A DNA stretch of 64,000 bases from Tubulanus polymorphus. Its lineage: Eukaryota; Animalia; Nemertea. The stretch is from assembly GCF_964204645.1 (NCBI RefSeq), contig NC_134034.1, forward strand, positions 12,846,962-12,910,961. The letters are read 5' to 3'. Each line of letters opens with the position of its first letter. Within the stretch, counting starts at the first letter, position 1. The translations under genes and the position numbers were made by a program. The notes beneath the pieces were generated by a model. It worked only from the letters and a program-made list of their open reading frames with translations, did not search any database and had not been told where the DNA came from. Shown here piece after piece: positions 9,001-60,250 of the stretch.

Positions 9001-12000
9001 AGTTAGATTTGCTATAGAGCTGAAATGGTCTAGTCTAAGACTGGTCTAAAATTGTTAGATTTGCTATAGAGCCGAAATGGTCTAGTCTAAGACTGGTCTA
9101 AAATAGTTAGATTTGCTATAGAGCCAAACTAAGATTAGAATATGGATTTCATACATACCTTCAGCGTTTGACTGCTCAGTTTATTCAGTATAGGCAGATA
9201 GGATTTAAACTCCTGTAGGTTTCTATAGAACTGTATAAGCACTTGATCGTCTAACGGAACGTGTCTCTTCATCTGGACAGCGATTCCCTGCCATTCGTGA
9301 ATCTTCTCCAAAATCTTCTTCACGTTCAACTGAAAATAGAAACACAAATATGTTTCTCACGTTGTTTCATTGTTTGTGAGGAGGGGATGATGGGTTGGTT
9401 CGGGGTCCAGTTTCATGAAAAGTTTGAACTCAAAATTTCTGATTAATCACTTAATTCACATTGTCAATGAGGACAAATTAACTTATACGAAGCCGAACTA
9501 AGCTTAAACTTTTTCATTGTGAAACCGGACCGCGAGTCCAGATTAAGTTTTGAGTTGGGATTTGATTCACTGAAAATGAAATGATTTTAACCTAGAGTTA
9601 ACTCTAACTCACAAGACTGTGGAACTGGATCCTGAGTTCAGAGTTTAACTCTAATTCACAGCTGTGGAACTGGATCCTGAGTTCAGAGTTAACTCTAATT
9701 CACAAGACTGTGGAACTGAATCCTGTGTTCAGAGTTAACTCTAATTCACAACTGTGGAACTGGATCCTGAGTTCAGAGTTAACTCTAATTCACAAGACTG
9801 TGGAACTGAATCCTGAGTTCAGAGTTTAACTCTAATTCACAGCTGTAAAAGATTTAACTCAGCATTAACTCATTGAAAGTTAACTACCTCTAACTCACAG
9901 AGTTAACTCAGGAGACTGAAGAACTGGATCCAGTTCCACAGTAGTGAGTTAGAGTTAACTCTGAGTTAAAATTAGTTCATGAGTTCATTGAGCTAACCCA
10001 GAGTCAAATCTTAACTCACAACTGTGGAACTGGACCCTGAAAGTGAGATATACCTTTCTGAACAGCATATTCCTCCAGTCTTGTATCGTACTGATCGATG
10101 TATCCAGATACTTCCACAATTCGTGGCGAATTTCCATTTTCGCTTGAAGATCTTTCAGATATTCCAAATCACACGATTCCCCTGCGAAAAATACAAATTC
10201 TCGTTTAACCCAAAACAAGTATCGTACGAAATATCACATCACATTTTGATATATCTGAGAATGTATTGTAATGTAATTTATTTCATCATCAATTATAATT
10301 ACAAATAAAATCTATAACAAATAAGTAGCTTGATGATGAGGAACAGAGCCTTAAAGGCTGTACAATCACTAGGACGTTCAGGCCCCTAGAGAAAAATAAC
10401 AGAAGAAGATTGATGGTAATGATAATAATAGTAATGCTAATAATAATAATGCTAATAATTATTATATTATTATTATTATATTAATAATAATAACAAGAAT
10501 AATAATTATTATTATATTATTATTATATTAACAATAATAATAATAATAATGATATTAATGCTAATAATCATAATGACAATAATTATGATAATAATCATAA
10601 TGACAATAATCTGATGAATATCTGATGAATATCTGGTATTGTATCTGTACCTGTGATAGTTTTCTTCCAATCGCTGACTTCGTGAAGTTTATCCCTGATT
10701 TTGATAAACTGCGCGAAAAGTTGCCGCAAGTCGGTAAGAATTTCGTAACAATTCGACGACGGATTCAGGTATTTTCCGGACGTCGCCTCGGTTACCAGAC
10801 GATTAGCCTCGTCCTCGAGCTTCTACAAAAATATCCCCGCAAAAAAATTGACGTTTATTTTAAGAACTTACGAAACAAAAAAAATAGCGATGAAAATGTG
10901 ACGCCGGTTTATCATCAAAAACAACCCAGTTGACAGACGTGAATCAACCTGATATCTCGAATTGGAGCAGTTTTCACCAAAAATGACACAAAAAAGTGTT
11001 AGTTTTTTTCAATAGAAAATGAACTAGAAATTATCATAATTTTCAGAGTATTTCGATATTTTTGATAGTAATTGAGCTCTCAAAAAGAGTAGAAATTACG
11101 CTCAAATAGAAGTCATTGAGTCAAGTCTGAGTTGGGTTTGGAGTTAAATCGATTCGATCAAATTTAACTCCTGACAGCGAAAATGGATTGAATATCTTAA
11201 TCACGTTGCCTTCAAATAAAAGGTAAATATGTTACAAAGTTTCACGCTGAACGACAGTTACATACATTACATCATTTAGAACTAAAGTGCGCGCATCTAT
11301 AGACCGTTCCTGACTAGATACCACGCTTCACATCGGCCCCCCTCCCCCAGGACTCTTCATCAGAATCTTTAACTATCTGCATTGTATTGTCCCAGGGTTG
11401 CAAACCTCTGAAAAGTGCTATCAGTAACAAATGGAAATTTTTCAATAAGCATTTCATGGAAATATGAAAGAATATATCTAGATTAATCAGTAATCAACAG
11501 TTAGACCCTCAGTAACATCTTTCATATGTCTGTATGCATCAAACAAATCAAATCAGTATTTTCTATTATAAAATAGTAACAAATACTGAAAATCAAGAAC
11601 AGTTGGCAGCAGCTTTGCTTGCGTTGTTCATTGCATTATCGGAATTTGGGGAAGGAAACACAATATGTACATTTCATTTATGTTTTCAAAAATTGCCCTC
11701 AGAATTAATCATTCCTGTACCGGATCTGATCAGAAACCCTTGTAGACAATGATAGCGGGATAGTCACCACACCTGACTGGTCACCAGTCACTACACCTGA
11801 CAGGTCACCGGTCACTACACATGACTGGTCACCAGTCACCACACCTGACTGGTCACCACTACTAACTGGGTTACCACACTGACCAGTCAAACTTTCACAC
11901 TCACTCAGTCACCAAGAGCTCAGTGGTCTAGTGGGTAGGACTGAGGGCTGGCAAGTTAGAGACCCAGGTTCAAATCCCACATTGGCTAGGGTTACAGTTA

Positions 12001-23310: not shown

Positions 23311-24763
23311 CTCTCTACAGTCTACTAACTAGAAGTTCAATCTGCCCAGCCTTTATCTCTCTGCTTCCCCGTTCCAGGTTCAGCCTCTCTTACTTTTCTA
23401 GCTAGCAGCAGGAGTTAAGACTTATCCCAGAAACCAAACCTAACTACAGCGTGCGTACATTACTACTGCCTTGTGTGCGCTGCCAAGATGACGATTGCGC
23501 GCTTTTTCGGCGTCTGGCAATAAAGTTCCATTAATTTGAATTTATTGGTTAGTTACGTTAATTATTCACCTTGTTCTGATTGAGACACGTCTTTAATCAA
23601 ACAATCACAAACACACAGTTTTATAGAACATCATTCAACAGTTTTAAATCCCGCACAGCTCACACATATTCACTAAACATTTAAAATACAAATTTACAAA
23701 CACGGAAGTAAATGAAAATAAACTGTCAAATATCTGGGTCTATTTCCCATCCGCGCTGGCAGCTCTATCGCTAAGTTTTATTCATCTAATAGCTACTCAT
23801 TCACTCAAATGACAATTATCAATTTTTATAGAAGTAATATATTTGATTTAAATATCAAAACATCAAATAAAATGTGATTTGTTATGTTTTTTATTGAAAG
23901 TTATGCAGGATTCGAACCTCGAACAGTGTCCGAGGGTTCCACTTTCGATAAGCGTCTCGTTGTCAAGGCTCAAGTGCCGCAGTTGGTTCAATCTAATTTT
24001 ATTGATAAAGATTATGAAAAAAATTGCAATACAAAAAATAGACCAGCATTTAAAAAGTCAATACAACAGTTAAGGCACTCGAAATATAGGAAGTAATTCA
24101 AATACTCGCGTACCGCAGTCGGCTTTAACTCGCATACCGCCATCGGTTTCAACTCGCGTGCCACAGTAAGTCTGACCGAAAGAGGAAAGCTCCGACGGCG
24201 GTCGGAGGCTATCTGGTGTCCATTACTCGTCTGCTCGTCTCTACCCCTAGAGCTCTGACATCGATCTGACTACAGCCCCGCCCACAAACACTCGTCTTCT
24301 ACGGCTGCAGATGGAATGAACAAGTGCCCCCGGGCTATTTCACCTGACCCCAAGAAACTAATAATAACCGGTAGATCATCGCAATATATTAATAAATATA
24401 GTTATCAATAAATCTATGACTCTTCATCTGTATCAATGGTCTAAACTTAGCCCAGCAGTGACAGTAGCAGCAGCACAGCCTGGCCACCCATGATAGTGAG
24501 GGTAATGACTATATATAGCCTCCCAGTGGTAGTACCGGTAAATAACGACTGACGATTATAGCGACCACGCCCAATATTACACGGTACCCCTAAAGCATTA
24601 ACAGGTAAACAGAAAACCAATAAAAGCGATCATACATTCGCAGTATCATTTACTGAATGTCAAAGTTCCATTCGTACATTCTTTGTTGGTGATACTGGGA
24701 AACCTAGAGGGATGCATGGAAGATTCTGAACCCACCGTTCCCCAGGTGGGTTTAATTGGACTC

Positions 24764-24988
24764 CTGGATCCAGTTCCACAGTTGTGTGGGTTTAATTCGA
24801 CTATGGATCCAGTTCCACAGTTATGTGGGTTTAATTCGACTCTGGATCCAGTTCCACCGCTGTGTGGGTTTAATTCGACTCTGGATCCAGTTCCACCGCT
24901 GTGTGGGTTTAATTCGACTCTGGATACAGTTCCACAGTTGTGTGAGTTTAATTCGACTCTAGATCCAGTTCCACAGTTGTGTGGGTTT
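24764..24988. repeat. 39-bp minisatellite with CCAGTTCCACAG core
   Basis: CTGGATCCAGTTCCACAGTTGTGTGGGTTTAATTCGACT repeated about 6 times. Confidence 0.93.
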
Positions 24989-27753: not shown

Positions 27754-27867
27754 CGAAATTTGTTTTTACAACAATTTTAAACATGGCATTTAACTCGACA
27801 TGATCTCCTTGACTCTTAATGTGAATAACTTTCTAACGAGCACACATTTTTTTATGGGGAAGTTTTC

Positions 27868-28798
27868 TGGACCCCAGTTTCACAGTGGTTCTCTGGACCC
27901 AGTTCCACAGCTGGTTCTCTGTACCCAGTTCCACAGTTCTGGACCCAGTTCCACAGCTGATTCTCTGTACCCAGTTCCATAGTTCTGGACTCGGTTCCAC
28001 AGTTGGTTCTCTGGACCCAGTTCCCCAATTCTGGACTCGGTTCCACAGTTGGTTCTCTGTACCCAGTTCCACAGCTGGTTCTCTGTACCCAGTTCCACAG
28101 TTCTGGACCCAGTTCCACAGCTGGTTCTCTGTACCCAGTTCCACAGTTCTGGACCCAGTTCCACAGCTGGTTCTCTGGACCCAGTTCCCCAATTCTGGAC
28201 TCGGTTCCACAGTTGGTTCTCTGGACCCAGTTCTACAATTCTGGACTCGGTTCCACAGCTGGTTCTCTGTACCCAGTTCCATAGTTCTGGACTCGGTTCC
28301 ACAGTTGGTTCTCTGGACCCAGTTCCACAGTTCTGGACCTGGTTCCACAGTTGGTTCTCTGTACCCAGTTCCACAGTTCTGGACCTGGTTCCACAGTTGG
28401 TTCTCTGTACCCAGTTCCACAATTCTGGACTCGGTTCCACAGTTGGTTCTCTGGAGCCAGTTCCACAATTCTGGACTCGGTTCCACAGCTGGTTCTCTGT
28501 ACCCAGTTCCATAGTTCTGGACTCGGTTCCACAGTTGGTTCTCTGGACCCAGTTCCACAGTTCTGGGCCTGGTTCCACTTCCATAGTTCTGGACTCGGTT
28601 CCACAGTTGGTTCTCTGTACCCAGTTCCACAGTTCTGGACTCGGTTCAAAAGTTGGTTCTCTGTACCCAGTTCCATAGTTCTGGACTCGGTTCCACAGTT
28701 GGTTCTCTGGACCCAGTTCCACAGTTCTGGACCTGGTTCCACAGTTGGTTCTCTGTACCCAGTTCCACAGTTCTGGACTCGGTTCAAAAGTTGGTTCT
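27868..28798. repeat. Satellite of alternating 20 and 27 bp units (47-bp higher order) with CCAGTTCCACAG core
   Basis: CTGGACTCGGTTCCACAGTTGGTTCTCTGTACCCAGTTCCACAGTT repeated about 20 times. Confidence 0.97.
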
Positions 28799-30061
28799 CC
28801 ATTATCTATTTATTCACATGCACAAATATGCAAATCACTTTGTTATAAATGTTCAATCATCACGTGATCCACTTCATCTTTCTTCATACTTCAAAATATT
28901 CTATTTTGTGTTGAAATTTAATATGATGTATATATATTTCTATCTGAAATAAAAAAAGTTGCATTTCCAAAAATCAGTCAAGTCAATATTCTTCGATTTC
29001 AGCGACAAAGTCGATCACGACACACGGTATAAAGGATGACCCATACTGTGAGAAGGAGGGGGGCCTACGCAGCAGTTTTGAACAATTCATAAGTGTTTTT
29101 GGCAATAAGTTGTTAGATTGGTTGTATATAGATCCAAAAAGATTCTTGCGCGTCCAAGAAGCGACACGGATTACAGTACCACGTTGATGCGTTTAATATG
29201 GAGACCCCCCACGGAGCCTGAATGGCTAATAATTCATTATATACATTCTAATACTACCACCATGCGTATGACAACATCGACAATGTGACGAATGTTAGTA
29301 TCTATTATTAGCAGTTCTTACCTGTGATTGGCTCTCAGATAATTAACGAGAGTACAAAATGGCATTAACGCCAATACCCGGTAAACAAGGTTCTCGGATT
29401 GATGTAAACGGTTAATGACCTTCAAGGTCATATTAGTCCCCACGATGCTGAATGGAACAACACGCCCGGCTGCCCCTAAAATAGTTTCCTATGAATCGTT
29501 GGCGGTAGCTTTTATAATCGCGTGGGCTTATACCAACAAAATGTATGGGCTTAAGACAAAAATCAGACGGATATCTCAAAAGACAACGAAATGACAGGCA
29601 AATTATTCTGATATTTCATTGAAAAATGCCGGACCGGCGTTCAGTTCCTGACTGTGGTGAAAATCATCGGCGATACTAAACCACAGGACAGGTTACTGAC
29701 TAGGATGCCCTCGGTTCGAACCCAGTAACTATACTGCGATGTTGTTTGATCTTCACCAGGGAAAAACTGATCATCGTATTCCTATGAATTAATGCATCAC
29801 TCAATTGTATCGTCTTATAAAGAGGAAGCTAAGATATGGAGCCCTCCCTGCAGTGAACCAGCTTAGTTGAATAGCGAAATAATAACTCTATATTCCGGTA
29901 GATGGCGCATGTGAAACTTGGTTCAGTTCGGTGCAAATCTTGGCTGCCAGAAATAGATAGTGATAGTTCAACAAAATTCCAATAGATGGCGAATATGCCG
30001 TATCGTTGTAATCAACGTAGGTTCGTACCCGGGACACTCTGCGCATTATCTGTCTGTTCAG

Positions 30062-37515: not shown

Positions 37516-40500
37516 CGATGAACAATTGGGCTGCAAATATTGTCCGGGTTAGACCAAAATTAGACTAAAATCCGTATTGAGCAGGTTTGACTGTACTTAA
37601 CCAACTAACCGAGGCACAGGGCTACCCAATTCTACTAAGTGCTGACTGTAACAGGTTGGGGCCAGTTGCTCAGAGTAGAATGCCATAGAGCTGATTGAAA
37701 TTGCATTTTTACCGTGGTATTTGTCCGCCATTAGAAGTTTTTCAAATTTTTTTCATTCTTGCTTTCTTTTGAGAACGTAATTCTAAGGTCACTGATATCA
37801 TACGATACTTTTTTGCCACCTCCCTCTCGTAGCTGGCTTTCAAGGGTTAAGAATTGGACTGTAAGTTAGGTGAGGAGGGCGAGTCGTACCTTCAAATGAA
37901 TTCAGCGCTGATAATTCACAATCATTGTACGTCAGAAGCAGACGTTCGCACACTAAAATACGTAATTCCCCGAGAGTGAGACTTTTCGGGTAACCCTCCG
38001 ACCACTGATTCACCATAGACTTCTGAACTGTCAGTAAAATCGGTTCGTGTTCGAGTCCGGTTAGAATAAATTTACCGGCGACCTGAAAAAAAAAAAACAA
38101 GCAGTCATTACTTCATCAGTTCAGTGGGCAGACGGAGGGGTCATGTGACATTGATTGACAGTAGCGGGAGGGGCCTTACGTACTTGTTGTCCATCCCACA
38201 CAAACACCATACAATTACTACTCAATTGAAATTCTTTTATACATTTTTCATCCTCTGAAATAACAAAATATAACCAGGTAACGAAATCCATAATCATAGG
38301 ACTGGGTCGGAGGCTGGAACTAGGTCAGGGAGTCTGTGGAATTAGGTCAGGGATTCTGAAGACCTACTAGGTCAGGAAGTCTGCGGAACTAGGTCAGGGA
38401 TTTATGGAATTGGGTCAGGGATTCTGTGAAACTAGGTCAGGGATTCTGAAGAACTAGGTCAGGAAGTCTGCGGAACTAGGTCAGGGATTCTGTGGTCAAT
38501 GAATACCTGATATTTGTTCATACAGATGAATGCCTGCTATCGTATCCTTAGCGACGTGAACTGTAAAACCGGGTGAAGGTCGTTTGAGTATTGATTGTAT
38601 TTCTGATATCAGTTCGCGCACGCGTTTCCTCTGATCGATTTTTACCGACAGATGTTGCGGCTCGATTCCCTCTCGTTGTTGTACAGCGCCACCTACGACG
38701 TCGTAATTCTCCGCCAGTAATATCTCGATATCGATCGTATTCGCCGCAATCTCGAACGCGGCTCTGAAAATATCGGAGATATCGAAATTCCAGAATCGAT
38801 TCAAATACGGACAGAGTAACCTTGACAAAATACCTTTGTTGAATGAGTTGATCGTTGCACTCGGCGACCTCGTCTCTCAACCAATCGGGAACGTCGTCTG
38901 TACCACTAGTAGCGCCCCCTAGTGATCGTAGTCGATAGAACAGCATATAAGCGCTCTCTCGTCCCGAGTATTGTTTCTCTAGTTGTTCAGTTTGTATCGC
39001 TTGGACGCGAGTATCGTTAAAATCGTACCAACAATACCCGTTAGGGGGCGCCGGCGACGTCGACCTATACATATAAGATGAAATAGATTATCGTCCAGTT
39101 CGACGCTAGACGCGTCAATTCTACGCACGGTTCTCTATTTACCGGTTCTGCTGCTGATTCGCGCGTTCGTCTTCGTTCGTTTCGACGTTTTTCAAACGGA
39201 CGCAATTCGAACCGGATTCAAACGCGAACACGTCGTCGTGTTTCCTTAAAAACTTCACGGAGAAAAAAAACAAGCATGAAACGCGACCGTAGAAATAGGT
39301 CCGTTGGGTGGCGGGGGGGCTATAATCATCATTCAGTTCACACCCCAGGATCCAGTTCCTCAGTTGTGAGTTCAGAGTAAACTCTGAGTTAAAGTTAGTT
39401 CATTTTCAAAGTTTGAAACTGTATCGTCAAATCTTGACAGAGGACCGACTGCTCAAACTGGATCCCGCTCTTAACAACAGAGCCACAACCAAAATCAATT
39501 CGGAACTGTGGAACTGGTGGACCCAGAGTTATAGATGAAATTGAAGTGAAGGTCAACATTCTGGGACCGGTGTCTCGAACAGGGCCTCGGTTGATTCAAC
39601 ATTTTGAGACCGGTGTCTCGAACAGGGCCTCGGTTGATTCAACATTTTGGGACAGGTGTCTCGAACAGGGCCTCGGTTGATTCAACATTTTGAGACCGGT
39701 GTCTCGAACGGGGCCTCGGTTGATTCAACATTTTGAGACCGGTGTCTCGAACAGGGCCTCGGTTGATTCAACATTCTGGGACTAGTGTCTCGAACAGGGC
39801 CTCGGTTGATTCAACATTTTGGGACCGGTGTCTCGAACAGGGCCTCGGTGGAATATTTACCTTATTTATGGAACCGTTATTCTTCTTGAAGCGTTTATTC
39901 CATGAAACCCCGGTTTGTTTTACCAATTCCTGTTCGATAATCAAACACATAGTTACCTTTAGTAAACAGATAATACATGTACACGGGTACACAGATAATA
40001 CATGTACACAGACGAGTAGGGTGCGATCTAATCACATGTCCGATTGCCGGGATAAGTATATTCCCATTACAGGGTCCGAGCTAAGGAATGAAATCCACTT
40101 GCCCCGGGGAAAGCATATCTGATATTTTGCTTGCCCCCTCCAAAAGTACTTGCCCTACACAGGCAGTCTGATTGGTGGCACTATCATCTGTTGTATCCAG
40201 TGGGAAAAAAACTTTGTGACATGAAATTACACTAGCCCGGGGGACTAGTGATAATGATTACCTACTTGCCCTGATGAGAATATACTTGTCCTGGGCAATC
40301 GGACAAGTGCTTAGATTGCACCCTGCATTAGGGGCAAGTAGTTTAGTCATTTTCATTCGACTACCGGGCTAGTGCATATGTATGTCTCCAAGCTTTTATC
40401 CCAATCGATGAAACGGATGATTGTGCCACCAATTGGACAACATGTCAAGGGTAAGTGAAATATCGGGTACACCTGTCCCCGGGCAGCAAGTGGCTTTTGT

Positions 40501-45435: not shown

Positions 45436-48400
45436 ATGACAGCTGAAAACGAGGGGTTACGCCTTTTAACGGACCCTAATTACGGCAAACCTAGAAAAAA
45501 ACAACTACAAGTACGCATTTATAATTATTGTTAATTGCGGGCACTTGTCACTCGTTGTGTATTGCGCAATCAGTTCTGACTGGCAATGTTCTGTCCGGTG
45601 TGTTTACATACGATCGAATCAATTCAATTCAAAAAACACCCAGCACACCTCGGCACCAAATTATCAGTGATTATTAAAACAGGAAATATGAGTGGGGGTC
45701 TGTTTTGGAAAACTCCTGGTCTAAATAATCATCGCCCGACAGGGATTCGAACCGATGGCATGGCTACACTCAGCCACGGCATAAAACCCTGCCACATAAG
45801 ACGGCCCCAAAAACTTGCGGCACCAATCAGATTGCTCGTTGTGTAATCGCTCGGGCAAATTTAACGGATAAACTATGGAAAAACCTGGGCTAGAATAACT
45901 AGTATTTCTGATTGGCTGATAGTGACATCATCTAAGCTGTGCACCAGGGGCCAGTTGCACAGTTGTGACTTAAGTTCAAAAGTGGTCTTAAATCTTAAGA
46001 CTGGTCTTAAGTTGTTAGATTGGCTATAGAACTAAGTTGGTCTTAGACTGGTCTTAAGCCTAAGCCATGACTATGCAACCGGCCCCAGGGTTTCGGTATA
46101 GTGGCGACTCTTAGGATGTCATCAGGTTCGAATCCCTACTGCCAGTCGGAGGTATCTAGCTCTGCCCTCCCCTCGTCTCCCGTTCTGTTGCGTTCAGTAG
46201 CAATCTCCTCTCATTTCAGTCGTTACAGAATCTGGTGAAACCTCACATCGATTCGTTTAACTATTTCGTAAACGAAGGCTTGAAAACGTGTTGTAAGGTA
46301 ATCATTGAAAATTCGGATCGCGCACCTAAAAAAAAAACAATTAAAATTCGGTCGATTGAAGAGTTTAATTTTCTGTTTTTCATTTATTTAGTTTTTGAAT
46401 CCGGTTGAATTCGTTTTGCCTCGAAACGATCAAAATAAAGAACTCGAACAGAAAATCTGTTTGGATATATTGGTAAGTTTTCAATTCCTCCTGGGGTGAA
46501 CTCAGTTCTGTGAACTCCGTGAACTTTTCCTAACCGCAGGTGAACTCAGTTCTGCGAACTCCGTGAACTCTTCCTAACTGTAGGTGAACTCAGTTCTGCG
46601 AACTCTGGGAACTCTTCCTAACCGTAGGTGAACTCAGTTCTGCGAACTCCGTGAACTCCTCCTAACCGCAGGTGAACTCAGTTCTGTGAACTCCGTGAAC
46701 TCTTCCTAACCGCAGGTGAACTCAGTTCTGTGAACTCTGTGAACTCTTCCTAACCGTAGGTGAACTCAGTTCTGTGAACTCTGTGAACTCTTCCTAACCG
46801 TAGGTGAACTCAGTTCTGCGAACTCCGTGAACTCTTCCTAACCGCAGGTGAACTCAGTTCTGTGAACTCTGTGAACTCTTCCTAACCGTAGGTGAACTCA
46901 GTTCTGCGAACTCCGTGAACTCCTCCTAACCGCAGGTGAACTCAGTTCTGTGAACTCTGTGAACTCTTCCTAACCGTAGGTGAACTCAGTTCTGTGAACT
47001 CTTCCTAACTGTTGGTGAACTCAGTTCTGTGAACTCCGTGAACTCTTCCTAACCGCAGGTGAACTCAGTTCTGTGAACTCTTCCTAACTGTTGGTGAACT
47101 CAGTTCTGTGAACTCTGTGAACTCTTCCTAACCGTAGGTGAACTCAGTTCTGTGAACTCTTCCTAACTGTTGGTGAACTCAGTTCTGTGAACTCCGTGAA
47201 CTCTTCCTAACCGCAGGCGAACTCAGTTCTGCGAACTCCATCTCTGAACTTCTTCGGTGAACTCCTTGCTGAACTCAGTGAACTCCTCTTTGAACTGTCT
47301 TAATCCTTTCAGATTGTTTTCAATTTTGTGGCTTTTTTTTTACAGGACGCGCAAATTAGTCGACCTACTGTTGCAAGGGGCAACTTGACAGCTAAATCCC
47401 TGCATGTTTACCCAGCTGAGGTAAGTAGCTCCACCAGCTTAAACAGAAGCAGATGTGATTCACGGTCGTACCTAGCATTTGAATTTTTGCGGCTGTCAAT
47501 CAGCAGTCTGTCCCCACCCCCTTCGACGTCATCCTTTTGAATGGCGAAGTCTGGGTTCGCAAATGGTGCATGCTTGTCATTGTGACACCTAAATTCATTT
47601 TCAAATAAAAATATCTAGGGTTACTGCCTCGGGGAGTGGCTACACCTGGACAAATGGAGTTCGAAAAAAATGGTAATGATAATGATAAAGATATGATCGC
47701 TGCGTTTAGGGAGGGGGGCAGAGAAACCTGAAAAAGGGCAGTTCTATTGGATATAACAATCATATTTGCAAAATGGGCCCCTTTTCCAAAATTTCTGCCA
47801 AACGTGCCGATTGTGAAATGTACTATTTATTGACCACAGTTCGTGTTATTTGTTGTTTTTAGTGTAGAGGGCGCGGCACGTCGTATCGAGGCAAACTATC
47901 GGTTACGCTACAATGGAAAATAGATGGCGTTGTAAGCGGTAGAATAGAAACGCATGTCGGAGAGGTGCCAATCATGGTGAAGGTAATTCTCGAGTATGCC
48001 AACACCTTCGGTTCGATCATCGAATTACGATTCTAACTTACCTGCATTTGTATCGAGATCGACTTCTTGTTGATTTTATCTTATCAGCGCTGTTGCAGCA
48101 AAATAAATGTTCCACGTCAACTTTGACAATTGAATTACTTTCAACGTATCAGTAATTACAGGCACACCCCGGGCTGGACGAGTGGGGTGTAAATTTCTAT
48201 AGGACTCTATGATATTACTGGATTACAAAATCGTCTCCACAGAGCAGCTGGGGGGAGGGGTGTATGATTGAGGGTCATGTTACAGGGGAAAAAAGTTGTC
48301 ACCGTGTAACTGCCGGGGTTATATGACAATCAGTGCCCCCTATCGGTGAATGTTATAACTGTTTATTCGTTACAGTCTGACGTGTGTAATTTGAACGGAT

Positions 48401-51400
48401 TAAATCCGACTCAGTTGATCCGACACGGAGAGGAGGCCGAGGAAATGGGAGGATATTTCATCGTAAACGGACTGGAAAAAATCATCCGAATGTTAGTGAT
48501 GCCTCGTAGTAACTACGTAAGTAACTACACGAGTAGATCTTGGGCAGAGATAGTAACTATGTAAGTAGATCTTGGGCAGAGATAGTAACTACGTAAGTAG
48601 ATCTTGGGCAGAGATAGTAACTACGTAAGTAGATCTTGGGCAGAGATAGTAACTACGTAAGTAGATCTTGGGCAGAGATAGTAACTACGTAAGTAGATCT
48701 TGGGCAGAGATAGTAACTATGTAAGTAGATCTTGGGCAGAGATAGTAACTATGTAAGTAGATCTTGGGCAGAGATAGTAACTACGTAAGTAGATCTTGGG
48801 CAGAGATAGTAACTACGTAAGTAGATCTTGGGCAGAGATAGTAACTATGTAAGTAGATCTTGGGCAGAGATAGTAACTATGTAAGTAGATGTTGGGCAGA
48901 GATAGTAACTACGTAAGTACATCCCCTCATCAGGTGAAATACACGTGAATCAAATGATTTAACTACAGAGGCCGGTTTAATAGGCTGACTGGTATTAACT
49001 TTAACCTGGGGGCTAACTTAATTCATTTTCAATTGAGTTAACCCCCGGGTTGAGAGATGATACCAGTCTAAAGAACCGGGCCCAACAACATAAGTTGTAG
49101 AATTACAAGTGCGTAATTCTAAGCTAATTATTAACCAGAGCCCGGTTTCATAGACTGAGCATCTAAGTTATGCCTAGGGATAAATCCTCAATTTGGGTGA
49201 CAACCGCCATAGCAACAATGAGAAACCATTGTTATATCTGACAAACTTCTTCCACATCTTTGAAACCCGGCCTATGGGTTTAAGTACAAGCTAGTAATAT
49301 CAATACATTTAAGATTTAAGTACTAAGACGAACTAAATAAGTCTCGTCGAACCCTGTAAATGGTTCAGCTAGCCCGGCGCCCTCCGTTCCTCAGCCACTG
49401 TATGATGGATGGTTTTTGATTTTGATTGTAGCCGGCTGCTGTATGTAGGAACAGTTGGACCGGACGAGGCCCTCAGTATACGAAATTCGGCGTCACTATG
49501 AGATGTGTCAGAAAAGATCTGTATTCATCCGTAAGTTGTAATCGAGTTTACTTTCAATATCACGCAGCTATCAACCTGTTGTCTGTACTTATCCCCCCTT
49601 AGACATCCGGACCTAGATAATCACCATTTTCCTCAATTATATTCATCCAGACATCACCATCCCCTATACGGCAGTAACTGCAGACATTTTTCTTTGAAAA
49701 TGAATTAAGGTTTCATCTCTGAGGGTGTCGCGATGTCTGAACCATCGATTTCAGACAGACGTTCGCAATTTGTGAAAGATGTGTTTGTCCACACTTTGTC
49801 GTTCAAAAGGTGGTCGCCGGAGGGTGTTTTTATGGTGCAGACCGCGGATTGACAGCTGAATCAGTTGGCTTCATTCAACCGTATTCCGTGGATCGGTCCT
49901 AGTTTAACTGTTAATTTGTGAGGTTTATTTTCAGGATTTAGTTCTACACTATCTGATGAATGGAACGGCCGTGTTGTGTTTCGCACAAAGTAAAGAACAA
50001 TTCTACATCCCGATTATATACGTTCTAAAGGTAAACGCTAATAGTCGGACTGTCGTCTTTAAAATCCTTAAAAAACTCGCCGGTGAATTATTGAAACGAC
50101 AATATTATTTCTCACTAGGCTCTGATAGACGTCCCCGATCAATTCATTTATTCAGAATTAATCAAAGGAAAAGAGGACGACGCGTTTTACAAAGGGTAAA
50201 TTTTCCCGCTAGATGGCGTTGTATATCGGTTAGTTCGCTGTTTACTTAATAGATGGCATTGTTTTTTTTTCATAGATGTATAGCGAACATGTTGAGACAG
50301 GCGCAAAGTGAAGGCGTTACCAAGCAACATCTCTTACAGAAATTCATCGGGGAGCGATTCCGAGTGAGACTACGACAACCGGAGTGGCATTCAGACGTAC
50401 AAATCTGTCAGTTCCTACTCAGGTTAGTTTCGACAGACCGCTCCCCCCTCAGCCCGCTCCCTTCCACCCGCTCCCTTCCACATCTCTTCATCCAGCCGTC
50501 TGATTCGTATTGTGTGTATTTCAGAGAATGTATCGCGATTCATCTGGATTCAAACGTCGACAAGTTCAACATTTTAGTGTAAGTTTTTATTAATTAACTT
50601 ATTAACTAATTGATTTTACGATTAATAGCTATGGTAGTCAGTACAACATTAATTGATCTGTCAATTAACTAATTGATTTGATAATTAATAGCTACAGTAG
50701 TCAGTGTGACATTAATTGATTTATTAATTAACTAATTGATTTGATAGTTAACAATTGTAGATTCAGTGAGACATTAATTGATTTATTAATTAACTAATTT
50801 ATTTGATAATTGTCTTTATTTTTCTAGGTATATGACTCGTAAGCTATTCTCTTTAGCGAAAGGAGAATGCGCCCCTGAAAACCCCGACAACCCGATGAAT
50901 CATGAAGTATTGTTAGGCGGCCATCTTTATCAGAAATTCATCCAGGTATCGTAAACTTAACGGTCCATTCAAATCGATCGGTGCTCGTAAATTAGAGGTC
51001 TGCTGTACGCCAGGATTTCATCATGTCTTACAGGAAAGGCTGTCTTACTGGTTGACTGCTTTGAAATATACGATTTTGAAGTTAGCTGATAAGAAAGTTG
51101 ATTTAAGCGTCGATGCAGGTATGGTAGTCAATGTATAAACTCTCTCTGTTGCTCTCCTCTTCTCTTTAACTCTCTCTCTCTCTTTCTCTTACACAGATTC
51201 GATTACGAAATGTTCAAAACTTGTTACGAATATCACGGCCTCCACGGAATTTCTGCTATCAACCGGGAATCTCGTTTCAAAATCGGGACTTGGTCTCATG
51301 CAGGTAAACGTTGTTGACCTCGCGGTCGTACGACGGTATCTAGTCTCATCCGTCCGCAAAAATGGGATATCGGCGGCACTCACCAGATGGCTCGACAAAA

Positions 51401-54400
51401 CAGTGGGTCATTCTCGTAATGGAAATCGGCTCGTTTTCAAGGAAATTTGAACTTGATTTTTAAGCTTCCAAATCTGAAAATTATCAAATGATTCATCGAA
51501 TACATTCCCTTTCTCACCTGACTCGGTGTCTGGCGTTGATCTCACTGAAAATTTATTTACTAATCGGAAAAGCTGACGAGGATTTAGTTGAAATTGAAAC
51601 ACGCTAACCCACTAGCGATCCTGGCGGAATCCTGGCTTGCCACAGTAGCCTTGCTGGTATCCCATTGAAACATGAAATAGTTTGGAGTTACTTCAGAATT
51701 TTGAATTTATATATTTGTGCTGATTTCGGTTGTGAAATGCCCCCCCCCCCCTGAATTTTAGTTTTCGATAAATTTTTTTTCAGCACTCCGGTTTAGCAGT
51801 CGTCGCCGATAAACTGAATTTCATGCGATATTTATCTCATTTCCGTTGCGTTCATCGGGGAGGATTCTTCACGACGATGAGAACGACGGCCGTTCGTAAA
51901 TTACTTCCCGAGGCGTGGGGTACGTTACACTTCGGCATCCAGTTTCAAATTTGCGAGTTAACATTTGACTCTTAGAGTTATAACATTGAAAATAAGCTAA
52001 TTTGAACTCGGAGTTAACTGTTACATCTGACGGAACCTGCTCGTTACTGCCGGTGATAATCATGTTAAAACTGTTCGTATTGTTGTAAAGTGTGTTTGTT
52101 GTTTTGTTTGTAGGATTTATGTGTCCGGTTCACACACCAGACGGAACCCCGTGTGGTCTGTTGAATCATATGAGTGCAAATTGTCAGGTAAGTTTCAACA
52201 AGTTACCGAATAAACTTGCGCCCGAGTTTCGGAGATATCTTTGCGCACAGTTCCGCAGATCCTGGTTTAGATTTGATTCTAATCTATGGTTGTTAAAATG
52301 TTAAGTTTGTTAATTTTACGCGTGTAGATTCAAACCTAACCAACTGTGGAACCAAATCCAGAGTCAACTGTGGAACTGGATCCGCAGTCAACTGTGGAAC
52401 TGAATCCAGTCAATTGTAGAACTGAATCCACTGTGGAACTGGGTTCAGAACTGTGGAACTGGGTTCAGAACTGTGGAACTGGACCCCGAACTGTGGAACT
52501 GGGTTTTGACCTGTAGAACTGGGTTCAGAACTGTGGAACTGGGTTCAGAACTGTGGAACTGGGTTCAGAACTGTGGAACTCGGTTCAGACCTGTAGAACT
52601 GGGTTCAGAACTGTGGAACTGGACCGCGAACTGTGGAGCTGGGTTTAGAATTGTGGAATTGGATTTAGAATTGTGGAACTGAGTTCAGTGGTATTTGTGT
52701 AAATAGAGTTGAATGTTTTAATGTTTTGTAGGTAGAGAATAAAGAACAGCCGTCTGCTCATCTCCCTCATCTGCTCTGCTCACTCGGAGTTTTACCGATC
52801 GATAGTCAAACAAACGTCTCTTATAAACAATGTTATCCCGTTATGTTGAACGGTAAAATGGTCGGCTGGTTGTCTAGCGACATCGCTCAACGGACGGCCG
52901 ATCAACTTCGCACGATGAAAGTAACCGGATACATGAAGGTAAAGGCAGTGCGGGGTTTGGGGTACGAGGGAGCGTGGAAGGGTGTGATCAGAGTTTGGAA
53001 ACGACTTGTGTTACTTGCAGAGTTGAGAAGTGTTGAATTATATAAACTACTTTCTCCGTTCTATCCAAGAGAGATCTGATATAAACTTTGCATCAAATTT
53101 GTGCAACGTCCAACAAACCTTCATCACTTTCCCGAACTAGATGCGGTGGTACCCCGGGAGACATTTTTCTTTGAAAATAGATTAAGGTGCCATGATGTTT
53201 GTCTGAACCATCAATTTTAGACAGATATTCACCATTTGTGAAAACTGTGTTCATCCAGAATCCTTATTATATTGTATTGTATTGTATTGTAGGTGGCGTC
53301 TTCGATGGAGATATGTTTAATACCGATGTCCGAACACCGCTCTCAGTATCCGGGGTTATATCTGTTCACGACTCTCGCTCGCATGATTCGTCCAGTTATG
53401 AATCTCGCTCACAAAAAAATCGAAATGATCGGATCTTTCGAACAAGTTTATCTCGATATTTGTGTCGTTGCGTCTGAAGGACATCGAGGGGTACGTAATC
53501 GACCGGGCGAGCGCCGGTTTTAAAATCAACCCCGGAAACATTTCTCATTATAGTTATGAGTTACGGGCAACCTTCATGTGGCAAGCGAGGATCCGCTAGG
53601 TGTCACTAGTGGCACTCGGTTACCGCGCTTCAATTACTTATATATTTCAATTAGATTGAAATTTCTCATCATTAACCCTTTCAGTGCGTCTACACCGCAG
53701 TGCGGTGTATAAATGGGTGATGGATTTTGCTAGTACACCGCACTGCAGTGTATTGATGTAATTAGTAATTATCTCTATTAAAAAATGGCAGCACCTGTGA
53801 AACATAGTGAAATACTAGTAACTAATGATACACCGCACCGCAGTGTAGACGCACTATAGTGGTATTCCCGTTATTAAACACACTAGGGAATTTTTAAGAA
53901 TTTTTAGATTATCTTCAGCACTATAGGGTACTATTAAGTCAGCACTGAAAGGGTTAAATCTATACCTTTTTTACACTGAGTGGGAAAGTGAATTTCTTTT
54001 CCAATCAATGACTTATTTGATTTGGAAGCCTAACAATCAAGACTTGTATGATTATTCAATGACGTACGGTGTCTATCTATAAAACTCAGATCCTCGTTTT
54101 ATTTTCAGAAAACGACCCATCAAGAGATCGACGAATGCACGATGTTGAGTTGTATCGCTAGTTTAACTCCGTATTCAGACTTCAATCAAAGTCCTCGAAA
54201 CATGTATCAATGCCAGGTGAGTTATAATGGGTCCGGGTGCCTGAAACGATTAACCGAGCAGAATGATGATTAAAAGGCGAATCAGAACTAGTGGCTCCGT
54301 CTTTATTAGGTAAACTGAAGCGTTATAACGCGCCTGTTTTTGCTGTGAGAGACGTTGAGCTATTTCAAATGTTGACTGAACTTTCTCTGACTGCTGCTGC

Positions 54401-56445
54401 TTCCTACTGATTCTAGGACAATTGCCCCTTGAATAAAATCCTTTTTAATCTGGATTAACACCACTTATGAATCATTTTAATCTTAAAGTAAGCCACAAAG
54501 ATAAAACAAAGCTAACCAACTTTAGCTAATAAGTGCAGCTAATTATTGTAGGACTGATTTAAAGTGTTCGGGGGTAATAATGTCCTGATAAGGCTACTGC
54601 AGCTGCTGCTGCCGCTGCTGCTGCCGCTGCTGCTGCCGCTGCTGCTGCCGCTGCTGCTGCCGCTGCTGCTGCTGGTGCTGCTGCTGCTGCTGGTGCCTCT
54701 GTAGTTGCTATTACTGCTGCTGCTGCTGCTAGTGCCTCTGTAGTTGCTATTACTGCTGCTGCTGCCTCTGTAGTTGCTATTACTGCTGCTGCTGCTGCTG
54801 GTGCCTCTGTAGTTGCTATTACTGCTGCTGCTGCTGCTGGTGCCTCTGTAGTTGCTATTACTGCTGCTGCTGCTGCTGCTGGTGCCTCTGTAGTTGCTAT
54901 TACTGCTGCTGCTGGTGCCTCTGTCGCAGCTACTGCTGCTGGTGTTGGTTGCAGATGTCGAATAGCTAACAATTGACTGGTAATGTGTTTATAGATGGGT
55001 AAGCAGACGATGGGAACGCCGTGTCACGCTCTTCAAGCTCGCAGTGATAATAAACTCTATCGGATACAGACGCCTCAGGCTCCCGTCGTTCGACCGACGA
55101 AATACAACGAATACAACATCGATGAATATCCACTCGGCACTAACGCAGTCGTAGCTGTTATCTCTTATACTGTAAGTATCACATCTACATCCATCATCAC
55201 CTTCATACAATTACAATATGTGTTTATTGCAGAATTATGATATGCGGTATTTGTTGCACCACTTGCAGGGTTTTGACACATGATATCACTGATATGTGTT
55301 GTATATTTTGCTGGTCATGATGTGATATTTGTTGTATCACTTGCAGGGCAATGATATGTGATAAGTATTGTATATTTTGCAGGGTTATGATAAGTGATGT
55401 GATATGTGGTGTATATTTTGCAGGGTTATGATATGCGATAAGTGATATATGGTGTATATTTTGCAGGGTTATGATATGAGATAAGTGATATGTGGTGTAT
55501 ATTTTGCAGGGTTATGATAAGTGATATGTGTTGTATATTTTGCAGGGTTATGATATGTGATAAGTGATATGTGTTGTATATTTTGCAGGGTTATGATATG
55601 CGATAAGTGATATGTGTTGTATATTTTGCAGGGTTATGATATGTGATAAGTGATATGTGGTGTATATTTTGCAGGGTTATGATAAGTGATATGTGTTGTA
55701 TATTTTGCAGGGTTATGATAAGTGATATGTGTTGTATATTTTGCAGGGTTATGATATGGAGGATGCGATGATATTGAGTAAGAGTTCGTACGAACGCGGT
55801 TTTTGTCACGGTTCGATTTATAAAACGGAGTTTATCGATTTGAAAGCGCTCGCCGGAGAACGCTACAGCGGAATTATTTATTTATTTGGTAAGTTCCATT
55901 CGCTAGCAGCAGCAGCAGCAGCAGCAGCAATTAATTTCATTTTGTCATTTTAAACCATCAGTCTTTCACTTGTCTCTCATGAATCCATGGTTCAAGGGGT
56001 TCGAATCCTAGTCAATAGTAGTGGATCCTCTCTGGCCTCTACCCTTAATGAATATGAAAAAGAAACCAAGATTCTGCTATATGAGTTGTTGGAAATGCCG
56101 CTCGGCAGGTCGGGGGATGCCAAAATGGCAATAATTACATCTTGTGGCTTTGCTATATTCAACCCGTACTATCTTGCCTATTGTTAACCATTGCCACCGA
56201 TATTTCAGTCAGCTGTATTAAGACCTGTGAAAGTGTGTTAACACAGCACAGCACACCACTACGCGGTATATAGGCATTTATCGATTAGCAGAAGACCGTC
56301 TGCTTTTCATTGTAGTTCCTTTTCATCTGTATAGGCGTCACCACGTACTTGCATCATCAAAATTAATTTAAGCTTATCTGGTACGGGGAGTGCACAATTG
56401 TTTTGGAGCGGTTAAGGGATGCTAATTATGACTGTATATATGAAG

Positions 56446-56489
<44 letters not shown>

Positions 56490-59400
56490 AATATATATAT
56501 TTCAGGTAAAGAAGCCGGCGATGAACGAGTCAGTAATCTAGATAGCGACGGACTGCCACCTATTGGCTCTACTATAAAATACGACGAACCTCTGTGCAGT
56601 TATATAAACATTCAAACGGGCGCCGCGAAAATTAAGAAATATCGAGGTTTAGAAGACGCAATCGTCGATAATATAAAATTTTGCGGCAGCGACCTCGGTA
56701 ACGAGAATTTACAGAAGGTAGCGATAACGTTACGCGTGCAACGTAATCCGATTATCGGCGATAAATTCGCTAGTCGTCACGGTCAGAAGGGTATCTGTAG
56801 GTACGTCTCGGAATATCGGCTCATTCGCTCAGCCACTATCCTTAACTTTTCCTTATTTCATTATTATTATTATTATTATCATTCAGGCTAAGTTCTTTTT
56901 TTTTCATTTCTTTTTGTTTGGTTTTTTTGTCCATCCTTACTATCTCTAGTATTGTGATTATTCATTTAATTTTGTCTTCTCTTTTTAACCCTTTCAGTGC
57001 GTCTACACCGCAGTGCAGTGTACGAATCATTGATAGATTTTGCTAGTACACCGCACTGCGGTGTATTGCTTTAATTAGTAATTACTAATTATCTCTCCTG
57101 AAAGATGGCAGCACCTGTCAAACATAGTGAAATATTAGTAACTAATGATATACCGCGCCATGGTGTAGACACACTATAGTGGTATTCCCGTTATTCAACA
57201 CACTAGGGTGGAATTTTTCAGAATTTTCAAATTATCTTCAGCACTATAGGGTATTAATTAGTCAGCACTGAAAGGGTTAAGGTGCCATCAATTAAAAAAG
57301 GTTTGGCTTTCTTTTGGCATCCGTGCTGTTGTATTGGAATCATTTATCAATCAATCGGGTTGAAATCAGTTGTGTTTGTTTTGTTTTGCAGTCAGAAATG
57401 GCCGGTCGAGAATTTACCGTTCTCGGAGAGTGGAATGACGCCGGATATCATATTCAACCCTCACGGTTTTCCGTCCAGAATGACAATAGGTACGTCACCG
57501 GGCAGGGCCGGATCCAGAACATATAAAGAGGGTAGCACCCGATGGAAAGAGCAGTCATTATTGAAAAGAAGCGCTATCCACGAGTAGCGAAAAGGGGTCT
57601 AGTTGGCCTCTCCCAGAGAAGTTTTTGAAAAATAAGCCCCTGCAGAAGACATTTCCAAGTATTTGAGTTCGTTTCAATTGCCATTGGTTACTTCATGTTT
57701 TCAATGAGGACAACAATTCAAACTTAACTGTTTTAGGCTTAAACTTTTTCCTGAAACGTGGCCCAGGATGGAAAGAAAATTTTTCGGGGAAAGCGTGGCA
57801 TCCTGTGCGGGGGGGGGGGGCTGTCTGGTATGATAGCGTTAACCTATCCGTCTCTCTGTCTGATTTATTTCAGGAATGATGATCGAATCTATGGCTGGTA
57901 AATCTGCTGCTATGCACGGTTTATGTCACGATGCGACGCCGTTCACGTTCTCTGAGGATCAACCGGCTATTGATTATTTTGGTCGTATGCTTACTGCAGG
58001 TTAGTACTGTTGAATGAAGCTACCTGAAATTCTAGAATTCTCTCCCGGTTAGCCAGTTGCTTGACCTTAAATAAGTTCATTTACTGGAGATGATTTTGTA
58101 ATTTTAGAAAATTCCACCAGTGTTGAATAACAGGCATACAGCTATGCATAATACGCAGTGCGGTGTATTGTTAGTTAACATTTAACAGTTGCACAGGTGC
58201 TGCCATCTTACAATAGAGATACAAACTAATATTTAATAACATCAATACACTGCGGTGCGGTGTACTAGTAAAATCTATCACCGATTAATACACCGCACTG
58301 GGATGTAGACGTAGTGAAAGGGTTAACCGTCTATAACCTGCATTTTAAACCCTGTCTACGTTTTTCGTTGTTTCTCGTAGCTGGTTATAACTATTACGGA
58401 ACCGAGCGTCTCTACAGCGGAGTCGACGGACGAGAATTCGAAGCCGATATTTTCATCGGCGTCGTTTACTATCAACGCCTTCGTCACATGGTCTCCGATA
58501 AATTCCAGGTTAGTAGTTTCTCCCGATCGCTCGCTAGATGGCGTATCGGTCTGCCGTTTCTCGATCGCATTCACAACAGGGTCCGATCTAAGGAATGAAA
58601 GCCACTTGCCCTCGGGGGAAAGCATATCTGATATTTTGCTTGCCCCTCTTAAGGATCTACAAGTAACAAGTAACTTGTTCCTTATTCAGATTTTCTCGTT
58701 TTTGCCGGTTCAACTTCGTCACCGGTTCACTGGGGTTAAAGATCTACTTGCCCTGTACACGGGTAGTCCAACTGATGGCACAATCATCGGTTATATCGAT
58801 TGGAAAAAAAGCTTTGAGACATAAAACACACTAGCCTGGTGCAGGGTCCGATCTAAGGAATGAAAGCCACTTGCCGGGGGGGGGGGGCAAGCATATCTGA
58901 AATTTTGCTTGCCCCCTCCCCCTGCTTGCCCTACACAGGCAGTTTGATTAGTGGCACTATCATCCGTTGTATCGATTTGGAAAAAGCCGTGTGAAATTAA
59001 ATTGCACTAGCCCGGGGGACAAGTGATAATGATAACCTACTTGCCCTGATGAGAATATACTTGTCCTGGGCAATCGGATAAGTGCTTAGATCGGACTCTG
59101 CTGGTGGGCAAGTGATTATCTACTTGCCCTAATGAAAATATACTTGTCCCGGGCAATCGGACAAGTGCTTTGTTCACACACTGGTTCACTAGATGGCGTA
59201 TCAGTGCGCTGTTACGACGCGTGTTGCGTTTAACGTTTTACAGGTACGAACGACGGGACCGATTGACTCGATCACTCATCAGCCAGTGAAGGGCCGTAAA
59301 CGAGCCGGCGGTATCCGATTCGGGGAGATGGAACGCGACGGATTGATTTCTCACGGAACGTCGTATTTACTGCAAGATCGTCTGTTTAACTGCTCCGATA

Positions 59401-60250
59401 AGAGTATCGTAAGTGGACATTATCTTTTCCGATCGTATCTTGCGCAGGCTCAGGTGTTGTGTGAAATATCGATCGAGGGGTAATAATCAGGGGGCACGTA
59501 TTTAGGGGGTTTCACTGCTCATTGACAAACTTCCGCCCGAAAGATGCCAGCATTTAGAAAATTTGAGCATCGACCTCAAAAGATTCACTCATTGGTAAAA
59601 ATGTGCACAAGCTTCCAAATTTACTTGATTTTGAGGCCAAATATTAGGAAAAGGAAGCAAAATTTTCACCCCAAATAAGCTGGAAGTTGTGAAGTTGCTT
59701 CTCTCTTTGCATCTAATTTTCAAAGAATTATTTCAAAGGTGTTTTTAAGTATGCAAATTTTGCATAAAACCTCTTCAAAAATGAAGAAATCGCGTTAGGT
59801 ATATGTCCGTAATGATAAATTCTGGTTTTGGTATGGAAAAAATGTGAGAAATCGTTTGTTTTTGTGTGAAGAATTGTGGAAGATTCAATGCGAAAAAAAT
59901 GTGTGATTTCAAACCATGCATCCTGGTTTTAGATTAAGATGAAACCATCTATTATCCGTGCACCAGTTATCTCCCACTGAGTTTCACAGAAATTTTCATT
60001 TTCTATTTTCTAGGCTCAGTTGTGTACGCGGTGCGGTAGTCTGTTGTCCCCGACGATGGATAAACTGCCCGCATTGTTAGCGGTGGTATCCCGTGACGCC
60101 GAACGCGTTTGGATGTGTTCCGTGTGTCGAGTTCGAGATACGATTAAACCGGTCGAGATTCCGTACGTATTTCGATATCTCGTCGCCGAACTCGCTTCGA
60201 TGAATATCAAAGTATCGCTCGACACCACGGAGAAATCTAAAATCAGATAA
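45436..60250 (+). CDS. POLR1B: DNA-directed RNA polymerase I subunit RPA2
   Basis: Motifs [137 protein letters not shown] and a C-terminal CxxC..CxxC zinc ribbon. Exons approx. 45436-45510, 46220-46297, 46392-46472, 47346-47420, 47863-47982, 48375-48516, 49432-49530, 49935-50030, 50119-50195, 50276-50422, 50525-50578, 50828-50945, 51034-51118, 51198-51303, 51784-51919, 52113-52187, 52732-52938, 53293-53491, 54109-54216, 54995-55171, 55747-55888, 56506-56800, 57392-57489, 57874-57999, 58381-58508, 59244-59408, 60014-60250. Confidence 0.97.
45948..46085. mobile_element. Harbinger/PIF-like MITE family B (other copies approx. 7945-8082, 8191-8343, 15198-15442, 21716-21853, 35000-35105, 43490-43630)
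   Basis: TIR GGGCCRGTTGCA; internal AGACTGGTCTTAAG subrepeats; CAG TSD. Confidence 0.82.
46496..47280. repeat. 43-bp minisatellite filling a POLR1B intron
   Basis: CAGGTGAACTCAGTTCTGTGAACTCCGTGAACTCTTCCTAACCG repeated about 17 times. Confidence 0.97.
48508..48919 (+). repeat. 32-bp minisatellite containing copies of the exon end and 5' splice site
   Basis: AGTAACTAYGTAAGTAGATCTTGGGCAGAGAT x12. Confidence 0.97.
52340..52690. repeat. 20-bp ACTGTGGAACTG-core minisatellite
   Basis: ACTGTGGAACTGGGTTCAGA repeated. Confidence 0.93.
53676..53953. mobile_element. piggyBac-like MITE
   Basis: TTAA on both sides; TIR CCCTTTCAGTGC. Confidence 0.85.
54595..54945. repeat. (GCT)n-based composite repeat
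   Basis: GCT runs plus a GGTGCCTCTGTAGTTGCTATTACT unit. Confidence 0.93.
55225..55760 (+). repeat. 36/43-bp minisatellite containing copies of the 3' splice site and exon start
   Basis: GTATATTTTGCAG|GGTTATGATA x10 including the functional copy, plus degenerate copies. Confidence 0.97.
55985..56265 (+). mobile_element. Probable SINE fragment
   Basis: B box GGTTCGAATCC near 55998 and an (ACAGC)n-like tail. Confidence 0.35.
56989..57276. mobile_element. piggyBac-like MITE (same family; partial copies approx. 14758-14860 and 58090-58323)
   Basis: TTAA TSD; TIR CCCTTTCAGTGC; similar to 53676-53953 throughout. Confidence 0.85.
58577..59183. mobile_element. CAGG-ended (hAT-like) MITE with a same-family copy nested inside (58842-59100)
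   Basis: Same family as 40017-40518. The inner copy is in the same orientation and flanked by CTGGTG/CTGGTG. Confidence 0.72.

Follow-up and report, generated by a model that had tools for sequence, protein, structure and literature searches.

A minisatellite of repeated 3' splice sites in front of the GYDMED exon of POLR1B in Tubulanus polymorphus, probably a tolerated product of boundary duplication

The stretch of DNA analysed here, called the window below, covers 64,000 nt of the genome of the nemertean Tubulanus polymorphus (NCBI RefSeq assembly GCF_964204645.1, contig NC_134034.1, positions 12,846,962 to 12,910,961 of the forward strand) and contains POLR1B, which encodes the RNA polymerase I (Pol I) subunit RPA2. 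In one intron of this gene, nine perfect copies of the 3' splice site stand in a row upstream of the authentic acceptor of the exon that encodes the GYDMED motif. This array is probably (about three chances in four by our estimate) a 'mirage' minisatellite, that is, a tandem repeat spanning an exon-intron boundary, which would be a tolerated by-product of a minisatellite-prone region and not a device of POLR1B. Positions are those of the window unless another sequence is named.

Structure of the acceptor array

The last ten bases of the intron and the first ten bases of the exon form the 20-mer TATTTTGCAG|GGTTATGATA (= TATTTTGCAGGGTTATGATA), which occurs in ten copies with 0 mismatches between 55373 and 55756 (starts at 55373, 55414, 55457, 55500, 55536, 55579, 55622, 55665, 55701 and 55737) and has 0 matches in 100 dinucleotide-preserving shuffles of the window. 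The tenth exact copy (55737-55756, + strand, AG at 55745-55746) is the authentic acceptor, with the exon starting at 55747, and the would-be exons behind the nine decoys start at 55383, 55424, 55467, 55510, 55546, 55589, 55632, 55675 and 55711. An earlier note on this DNA, made by reading its letters, had described nine perfect decoys in front of an authentic acceptor; exact matching bears out both the number of copies and the AG positions given there, as well as the statement that the copies are indistinguishable from -10 to +10, the ten 20-mers being identical.

Tandem Repeats Finder reports one array with a period of 43, higher-order periods of 79, 122 and 165, about 10-12 copies and a score of up to 702. 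Cut at each CAG from 55383 to 55746, the units measure 41, 43, 43, 36, 43, 43, 43, 36 and 36 nt. These nine well-kept units (55383-55746, + strand, 36-43 nt), of which those at 55510, 55675 and 55711 are identical, each consist of 10-12 nt of exon start followed by 26-31 nt of intron end including TATTTTGCAG, so that a full copy of the acceptor stands at the end of each; an internal AAG lies within every unit, and the final unit ends at 55746, directly abutting the authentic exon. Four or five decayed, older units precede them (55190-55382, + strand), three of which keep the CAG (would-be exon starts at 55233, 55269 and 55347) and one of which has CTG. The whole intron (55172-55746, + strand, 575 nt, with a GTAAGT donor at 55172) is thus about 90% repeat-derived. 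Compared with the 43-nt consensus, the decayed units are 75-94% identical, with the lowest values toward the 5' end, and the nine well-kept units 93-100%. In successive segments the identity is 75-86% (55190-55346), 93-95% (55347-55509) and 98-100% (55510-55746), and this gradient, together with the identical units, points to a tandem array that turns over and whose edge units decay; the decayed edge units in turn argue for long persistence of the array in a working essential gene.

The AG is retained in all nine well-kept decoys. Variation among the nine units amounts to three substitution sites and two indels, all of them outside the 20-mer. Selection preserving the 20-mer core was considered and rejected: about 5 variant events would all miss the core by chance with a probability of about 0.04-0.15, which is unconvincing, and the variable positions among the nine units hint at selection neither for nor against it. 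A dispersed repeat family was also ruled out, since the unit of the acceptor array is unique in the genome, its sequence being found nowhere else in the 268-Mb assembly.

Gene identity and consequences of decoy use

The identification of the gene comes from exon-by-exon searches. The upstream exon (54995-55171, + strand, translated MGKQTMG...AVISYT, with the acceptor tttatag ending at 54994 and a phase 0 end) aligns with residues 693-749 of the human POLR1B chain 7ob9_B (E 1.9e-20), and the GYDMED exon (55747-55888, + strand, 142 nt, with a G|GTAAGT donor at 55889) aligns with residues 750-787 of the same chain (E 3.8e-12). For both intron-flanking exons, the PDB matches are solely Pol I RPA2/RPA135 chains (human, S. 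pombe and yeast), in agreement with the gene and exon identity proposed in the earlier note. RPA2 is essential, and the ED motif is part of the active centre of the polymerase; we take the E-D of GYDMED to correspond to E836/D837 of Rpb2, the metal-B site. By six-frame reading, POLR1B has about 22 exons and occupies the region from about 46160 to 60250 (+ strand), the exon after the GYDMED exon beginning at 56506. The gene is single-copy: when the 268-Mb assembly was searched at the DNA level, its own locus alone was returned.

Read in the phase 0 frame of the upstream exon, all nine decoys lead to GYDK*, GYDMR* or GYDM*, with a stop after 4-6 codons, as the earlier note had also read them, and the three decayed CAG sites likewise run into stops. 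An open frame matching RPA2 follows the authentic acceptor and none of the other copies. On these reading frames, 55747 must be the only acceptor able to yield RPA2 and, because POLR1B is single-copy, the productive acceptor must be the last one. Use of the nearest decoys would give exons of 178 and 214 nt, which are still of normal size.

All ten sites read CAG|GGTTAT, and no AG|GTRAGT recursive splice site is present. Recursive splicing is therefore out, as the AG|GGTTAT junction regenerates no donor. The re-splicing that the earlier note had offered as one way to reach the last acceptor fails on this point, and the micro-exons of 11 or 18 nt that each unit could supply either break the frame or carry TGA/TAA. 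The ATAAGT within the unit had likewise been compared to a crippled GTAAGT donor, a reading that is rejected here; a hexamer with one mismatch is unremarkable in a 43-nt unit, and a unit derived from an acceptor needs no donor.

Boundary arrays elsewhere in the genome

The array in front of the GYDMED exon is not the only one of its build. A donor-side array lies in the same gene (48517-48923, + strand), where a unit of 32 bp, made of exon end and donor, is reiterated 12 times with 96% matches behind the real GTAAGT donor at 48517; all 12 decoy donors lead to a frameshift or an in-frame TAA. Furthermore, two TIP49-family genes were located in the genome, one of which has an exon that reads like RUVBL2, and this RUVBL2-like gene, on a chromosome other than that of POLR1B, carries an acceptor array (C11:13778793-13780403, - strand, 77 bp x 20.9, 97% identity), the unit of which consists of 17 nt of intron end and 60 nt of exon start and which abuts the real exon.

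Besides the two boundary arrays, POLR1B holds further minisatellites: five of its seven arrays are purely intronic, and two come to within 17 nt and 45 nt, respectively, of an acceptor. The latter distance is that of a GCT-rich compound minisatellite (54593-54949, periods 12, 39 and 108), which takes up much of the POLR1B intron before this one and stops 45 nt short of the 54995 acceptor, the splice site not being included. Under random seeding (about 42 boundaries, about 14 kb, 7 arrays, seeds of about 40 nt), about 0.9 boundary-spanning arrays are expected in the gene; with two observed (Poisson P about 0.2), no special cause is needed.

Repeat density around the locus

Minisatellites were counted with identical settings at five sampled spots. 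The window, which lies at 12.85-12.91 of 14.30 Mb, contains 38 non-redundant arrays in 64 kb, or 15.6% of its bases. Two other distal spots reach 4-8 arrays per 10 kb: 5 arrays were counted in 6.5 kb at the RUVBL2-like locus (at 13.78 of 13.98 Mb) and 4 in 10 kb at a third locus (at 27.63 of 27.81 Mb). The 44 kb sampled around the paralogues for Pol II and Pol III, at 26.4 of 31.9 Mb and at 6.46 of 32.1 Mb, contain 0 arrays. This distribution suggests repeat-rich domains toward the chromosome ends.

A core resembling CCAGTTCCACAG or CTGTGGAACTGG, in one orientation or the other, recurs in many arrays. These form a family of dispersed minisatellites, whereas each boundary array is specific to its locus; in the window they lie at 6329-6666, 9594-9846, 24746-24988, 27866-28799, 38315-38495 and 52341-52688, and outside it at L022 2274-2340 (in the RUVBL2-like locus) and L025 6915-7032. 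A piece of roughly 40 nt from the next POLR1B intron (55955-55999) also has 87-93% matches elsewhere in the genome. These recur every 65-70 nt in a tandem-like manner on C11 (about 2.5786-2.5790 Mb) and C12 (about 1.5055-1.5057 Mb), with single further matches on C15 and C3.

Comparison with homologues and a distant relative

With the upstream exon as query, 91 homologous exon-sized open reading frames (ORFs) of other animals carrying Pfam PF00562 were found in a protein collection; a transcript or protein of the same species was not found among these 91 homologues, the best of which had 85% identity. The intron position after ISYT is common to all eight of the homologous ORFs that were read, each of which runs on into the intron. 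Judged from these frames, the intron position is ancient, so that the array would represent growth of an existing intron rather than gain of a new one.

The closest homologue obtained, in an ENA assembly (L001), is 85% identical in the upstream exon and much less so in another exon. It has an intron at the same position, 4.8 kb long, which ends in a plain acceptor, ttcag|GGTTACGATATGGAAGAT, with no repeat of the acceptor; one distant relative is a weak test of conservation. This intron has a 33-bp x 19 array of its own (L001 6186-6820), which begins 9 nt past the donor. Another POLR1B exon end of L001 is duplicated once together with its GTAGGT donor (46 bp x 2; L001 245-338). These findings indicate that the POLR1B acceptor array is not ancient and that boundary duplication occurs in the lineage of L001 too. 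The 33-bp units were also seen to end in AACT|GTKGAG, which faintly resembles an exon end plus donor.

Proposed origin and choice of the authentic acceptor

We infer from the genomic sequence the mode of origin, the mechanism of selection and the low decoy use described here. A boundary segment of roughly 43 bp (about 31 nt of intron end and about 12 nt of exon start) would have been duplicated in tandem, and the array would then have expanded within the intron by unequal exchange or replication slippage. Local tandem duplication of the boundary is proposed because the boundary falls within the unit and because the array abuts the exon and occurs at this locus only. Copies upstream of the exon would leave the mRNA unchanged as long as the exon-attached copy is used, and a short ancestral intron, probably under 100 nt, may in this way have grown to 575 nt. 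If splicing occasionally went to a decoy, most probably to one near the exon, translation would stop after 4-6 codons, and nonsense-mediated mRNA decay (NMD) would be expected to remove the transcript.

The sequence from about -30 to +10/+12 cannot discriminate among the copies. Indeed, each unit has the same candidate branch region (TGAT at -24 to -21), the same short U-run and the same AG, and the authentic copy diverges from the decoys from +13 onward. A purine-rich stretch, GGAGGATGCGATGA... (55758-55776, + strand), with GGAGGA from +12, begins where the decoys cease to resemble the exon and is a candidate exonic enhancer. The last copy would be chosen since it alone is followed by a real exon, with the purine-rich GGAGGA and, 142 nt further on, a donor of consensus sequence (G|GTAAGT); we accordingly favour exon definition or dependence on an enhancer as what may set the authentic acceptor apart. 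Under either mechanism, any leakage should be greatest at the decoys nearest the exon (55711 and 55675).

Three points weigh against this account. The exon context is an incomplete discriminator, as the RUVBL2-like decoys carry 60 nt of exon; choice of the last of ten acceptors runs counter to a simple 5'-to-3' scan in which the first site wins; and the regional clustering of arrays rests on five sampled spots.

Alternative explanations

It is possible, though unlikely, that the decoys are used to an appreciable extent, with the gene bearing the loss, and that the array is a mildly harmful, drifting source of noise, not an effectively neutral one, which is maintained because repeats form locally at a high rate. 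The units are identical in their branch-point region, pyrimidine tract and AG, the exons formed with the nearest decoys (178 and 214 nt) would pass as normal, and proximal pseudo-sites are used in the human genes 6-16 and CBS (PMC1557585), all of which would fit such a cost. The decayed 5' edge units, however, imply long persistence in an essential single-copy gene, the retention of the AG in 9/9 copies suggests little pressure to disable them, and reverse transcription PCR (RT-PCR) of comparable amphioxus genes showed regular splicing (PMC3087553).

Another reading, which we consider very unlikely, is that decoy leakage is graded, being strongest nearest the exon, that both POLR1B arrays lower the amount of productive mRNA according to their length, and that the repeat number of these two unstable arrays is a heritable, fast-mutating modifier of Pol I. 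If this were true, array length would shift the Pol I level and hence ribosome production and growth, and arrays at chromosome ends would be a general source of quantitative variation in expression.

The earlier note had proposed a regulatory dial, in which a fixed or regulated share of transcripts goes to the decoys and to NMD, so that array length sets Pol I output. Each decoy is indeed a full acceptor copy that ends in an early stop, and constitutive use of the nearest pseudo-sites in two human donor-side arrays (PMC1557585) makes some leakage plausible. Against a dial stand the arrays of like build at the POLR1B donor and in an unrelated gene (RUVBL2-like), the position of the locus within sequence that is 15.6% minisatellite, the lack of an acceptor array in the one relative examined, itself distant, the agreement of two boundary arrays in POLR1B with random seeding, and a core without sign of selection. 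This reading is scarcely probable. The anatomy given in the earlier note and the puzzle of acceptor selection that it raised hold, whereas its NMD-coupled regulation is not supported and is made unlikely by the recurrence of such arrays, their repeat-rich setting and a relative without the array.

Mis-assembly of the array, or of its length, is highly improbable. Tandem repeats are prone to mis-sizing, and one array of this kind was assembled wrongly in the draft genome of amphioxus (PMC3087553); here, by contrast, 268 Mb in 77 contigs suggests a long-read assembly, the array is merely about 0.5 kb long, its aperiodic unit lengths and three substitution sites could not be created by collapse or stutter, and similar arrays lie at several loci. 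Finally, the idea that RNA structure hides the decoys and exposes the last acceptor alone can be dismissed as extremely improbable, as the fold of 55160-55800 (-167.2 kcal/mol) is no more stable than those of shuffles (-164.7 +/- 6.5; z = -0.38) and direct repeats do not pair mutually.

Relation to known systems

Boundary-spanning tandem repeats were named 'mirages' in amphioxus Adh3 by Canestro et al. 2002, as relayed in PMC3087553. The amphioxus globin genes BflGb6 and BflGb9 have mirages at both 3' and 5' boundaries, where RT-PCR indicated regular splicing, haplotypes differed in length and the units at the edges were divergent (PMC3087553), and such arrays were proposed to be unstable in length and to feed intron evolution (PMC3087553). 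The POLR1B array shares with them a unit that spans the boundary, an intronic location beside the authentic site and many units that keep the AG or GT; in both cases both 5' and 3' boundaries are affected, and edge units probably escape homogenisation in POLR1B as they do in amphioxus. The differences concern unit size (36-43 bp in POLR1B against 150-160 bp in the globin genes and 10-72 bp in Adh3) and host, POLR1B being an essential single-copy housekeeping gene with one array of each kind, in a different phylum from amphioxus. Regular splicing was seen by RT-PCR in amphioxus; for POLR1B it is a prediction from the genomic sequence.

On the donor side, in human F7 IVS7 (37 bp), CBS IVS13, the interferon-induced gene 6-16, LMNB2 and PDGFA, the first unit of a minisatellite spans the donor (PMC1557585). 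The authentic site alone is used in F7, LMNB2 and PDGFA, and the two nearest pseudo-sites are used as well in 6-16 and CBS (PMC1557585). Identical pseudo-sites beside an exon-attached site are common to these variable number tandem repeats (VNTRs) and to POLR1B, and the LMNB2 repeat, which 'covers most of an intron' (PMC1557585), resembles the POLR1B acceptor array in this respect too. Such arrays are natural models for the choice between splice sites. The donor array of POLR1B (48517-48923) corresponds directly to the human cases, and F7 IVS7 is closely analogous to it. In the human arrays, however, the sites are donors and the upstream-most one wins, which fits a 5'-to-3' scan, whereas the productive acceptor of POLR1B is the downstream-most of ten. 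A literature search found nothing useful on natural acceptor-side VNTRs outside amphioxus, and the work on minisatellites and splicing in C. elegans deals with regulatory motifs, not with copies of boundaries.

Three further systems are related in part. Regulated unproductive splicing shares with the POLR1B array that use of a decoy leads to a premature stop far upstream of later junctions; its known cases, however, are conserved, often autoregulated and documented in their use, whereas the POLR1B array is absent from one distant relative and its structure recurs in an unrelated gene. Recursive splicing at ratchet points shares the presence of several acceptor-like sites in one intron, but it needs AG|GTAAGT and POLR1B has AG|GGTTAT. 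The Rogers model of intron gain (discussed in PMC3087553) shares a tandem duplication over a splice signal, an unchanged mRNA and added intronic DNA, but the intron position in POLR1B was pre-existing, being shared with the eight homologues read.

Related loci

A search of the genome with PF00562 returned the POLR1B locus, two intron-containing paralogous loci elsewhere and two intronless ORFs on C8. The intron-containing paralogues, on other chromosomes, are taken to be the Pol II and Pol III subunits. The two intronless long ORFs (1177 and 1019 aa) match the Rpb2 domain 6 family (E about 7e-11). These beta-subunit-like ORFs, at C8:4526433-4526930 (+ strand) and C8:4634764-4635261 (- strand), lie about 108 kb apart in opposite orientation, in an animal genome.

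Significance

The POLR1B array belongs to a known kind, described in amphioxus in 2002 and 2010 and with human donor-side counterparts, and is ordinary as a single locus. Ten acceptors that are identical from -10 to +10, each with its branch-point region, the last alone being productive, nevertheless amount to a natural experiment. The array mirrors what is seen at the F7 donor, and a rule by which the first site wins cannot explain it. Essential genes with such arrays (POLR1B and RUVBL2) would permit a clean test of the role of exon context in the choice of the 3' splice site, and a genome of this kind would show the share of boundary duplication in intron growth and any clustering of the arrays toward chromosome ends.

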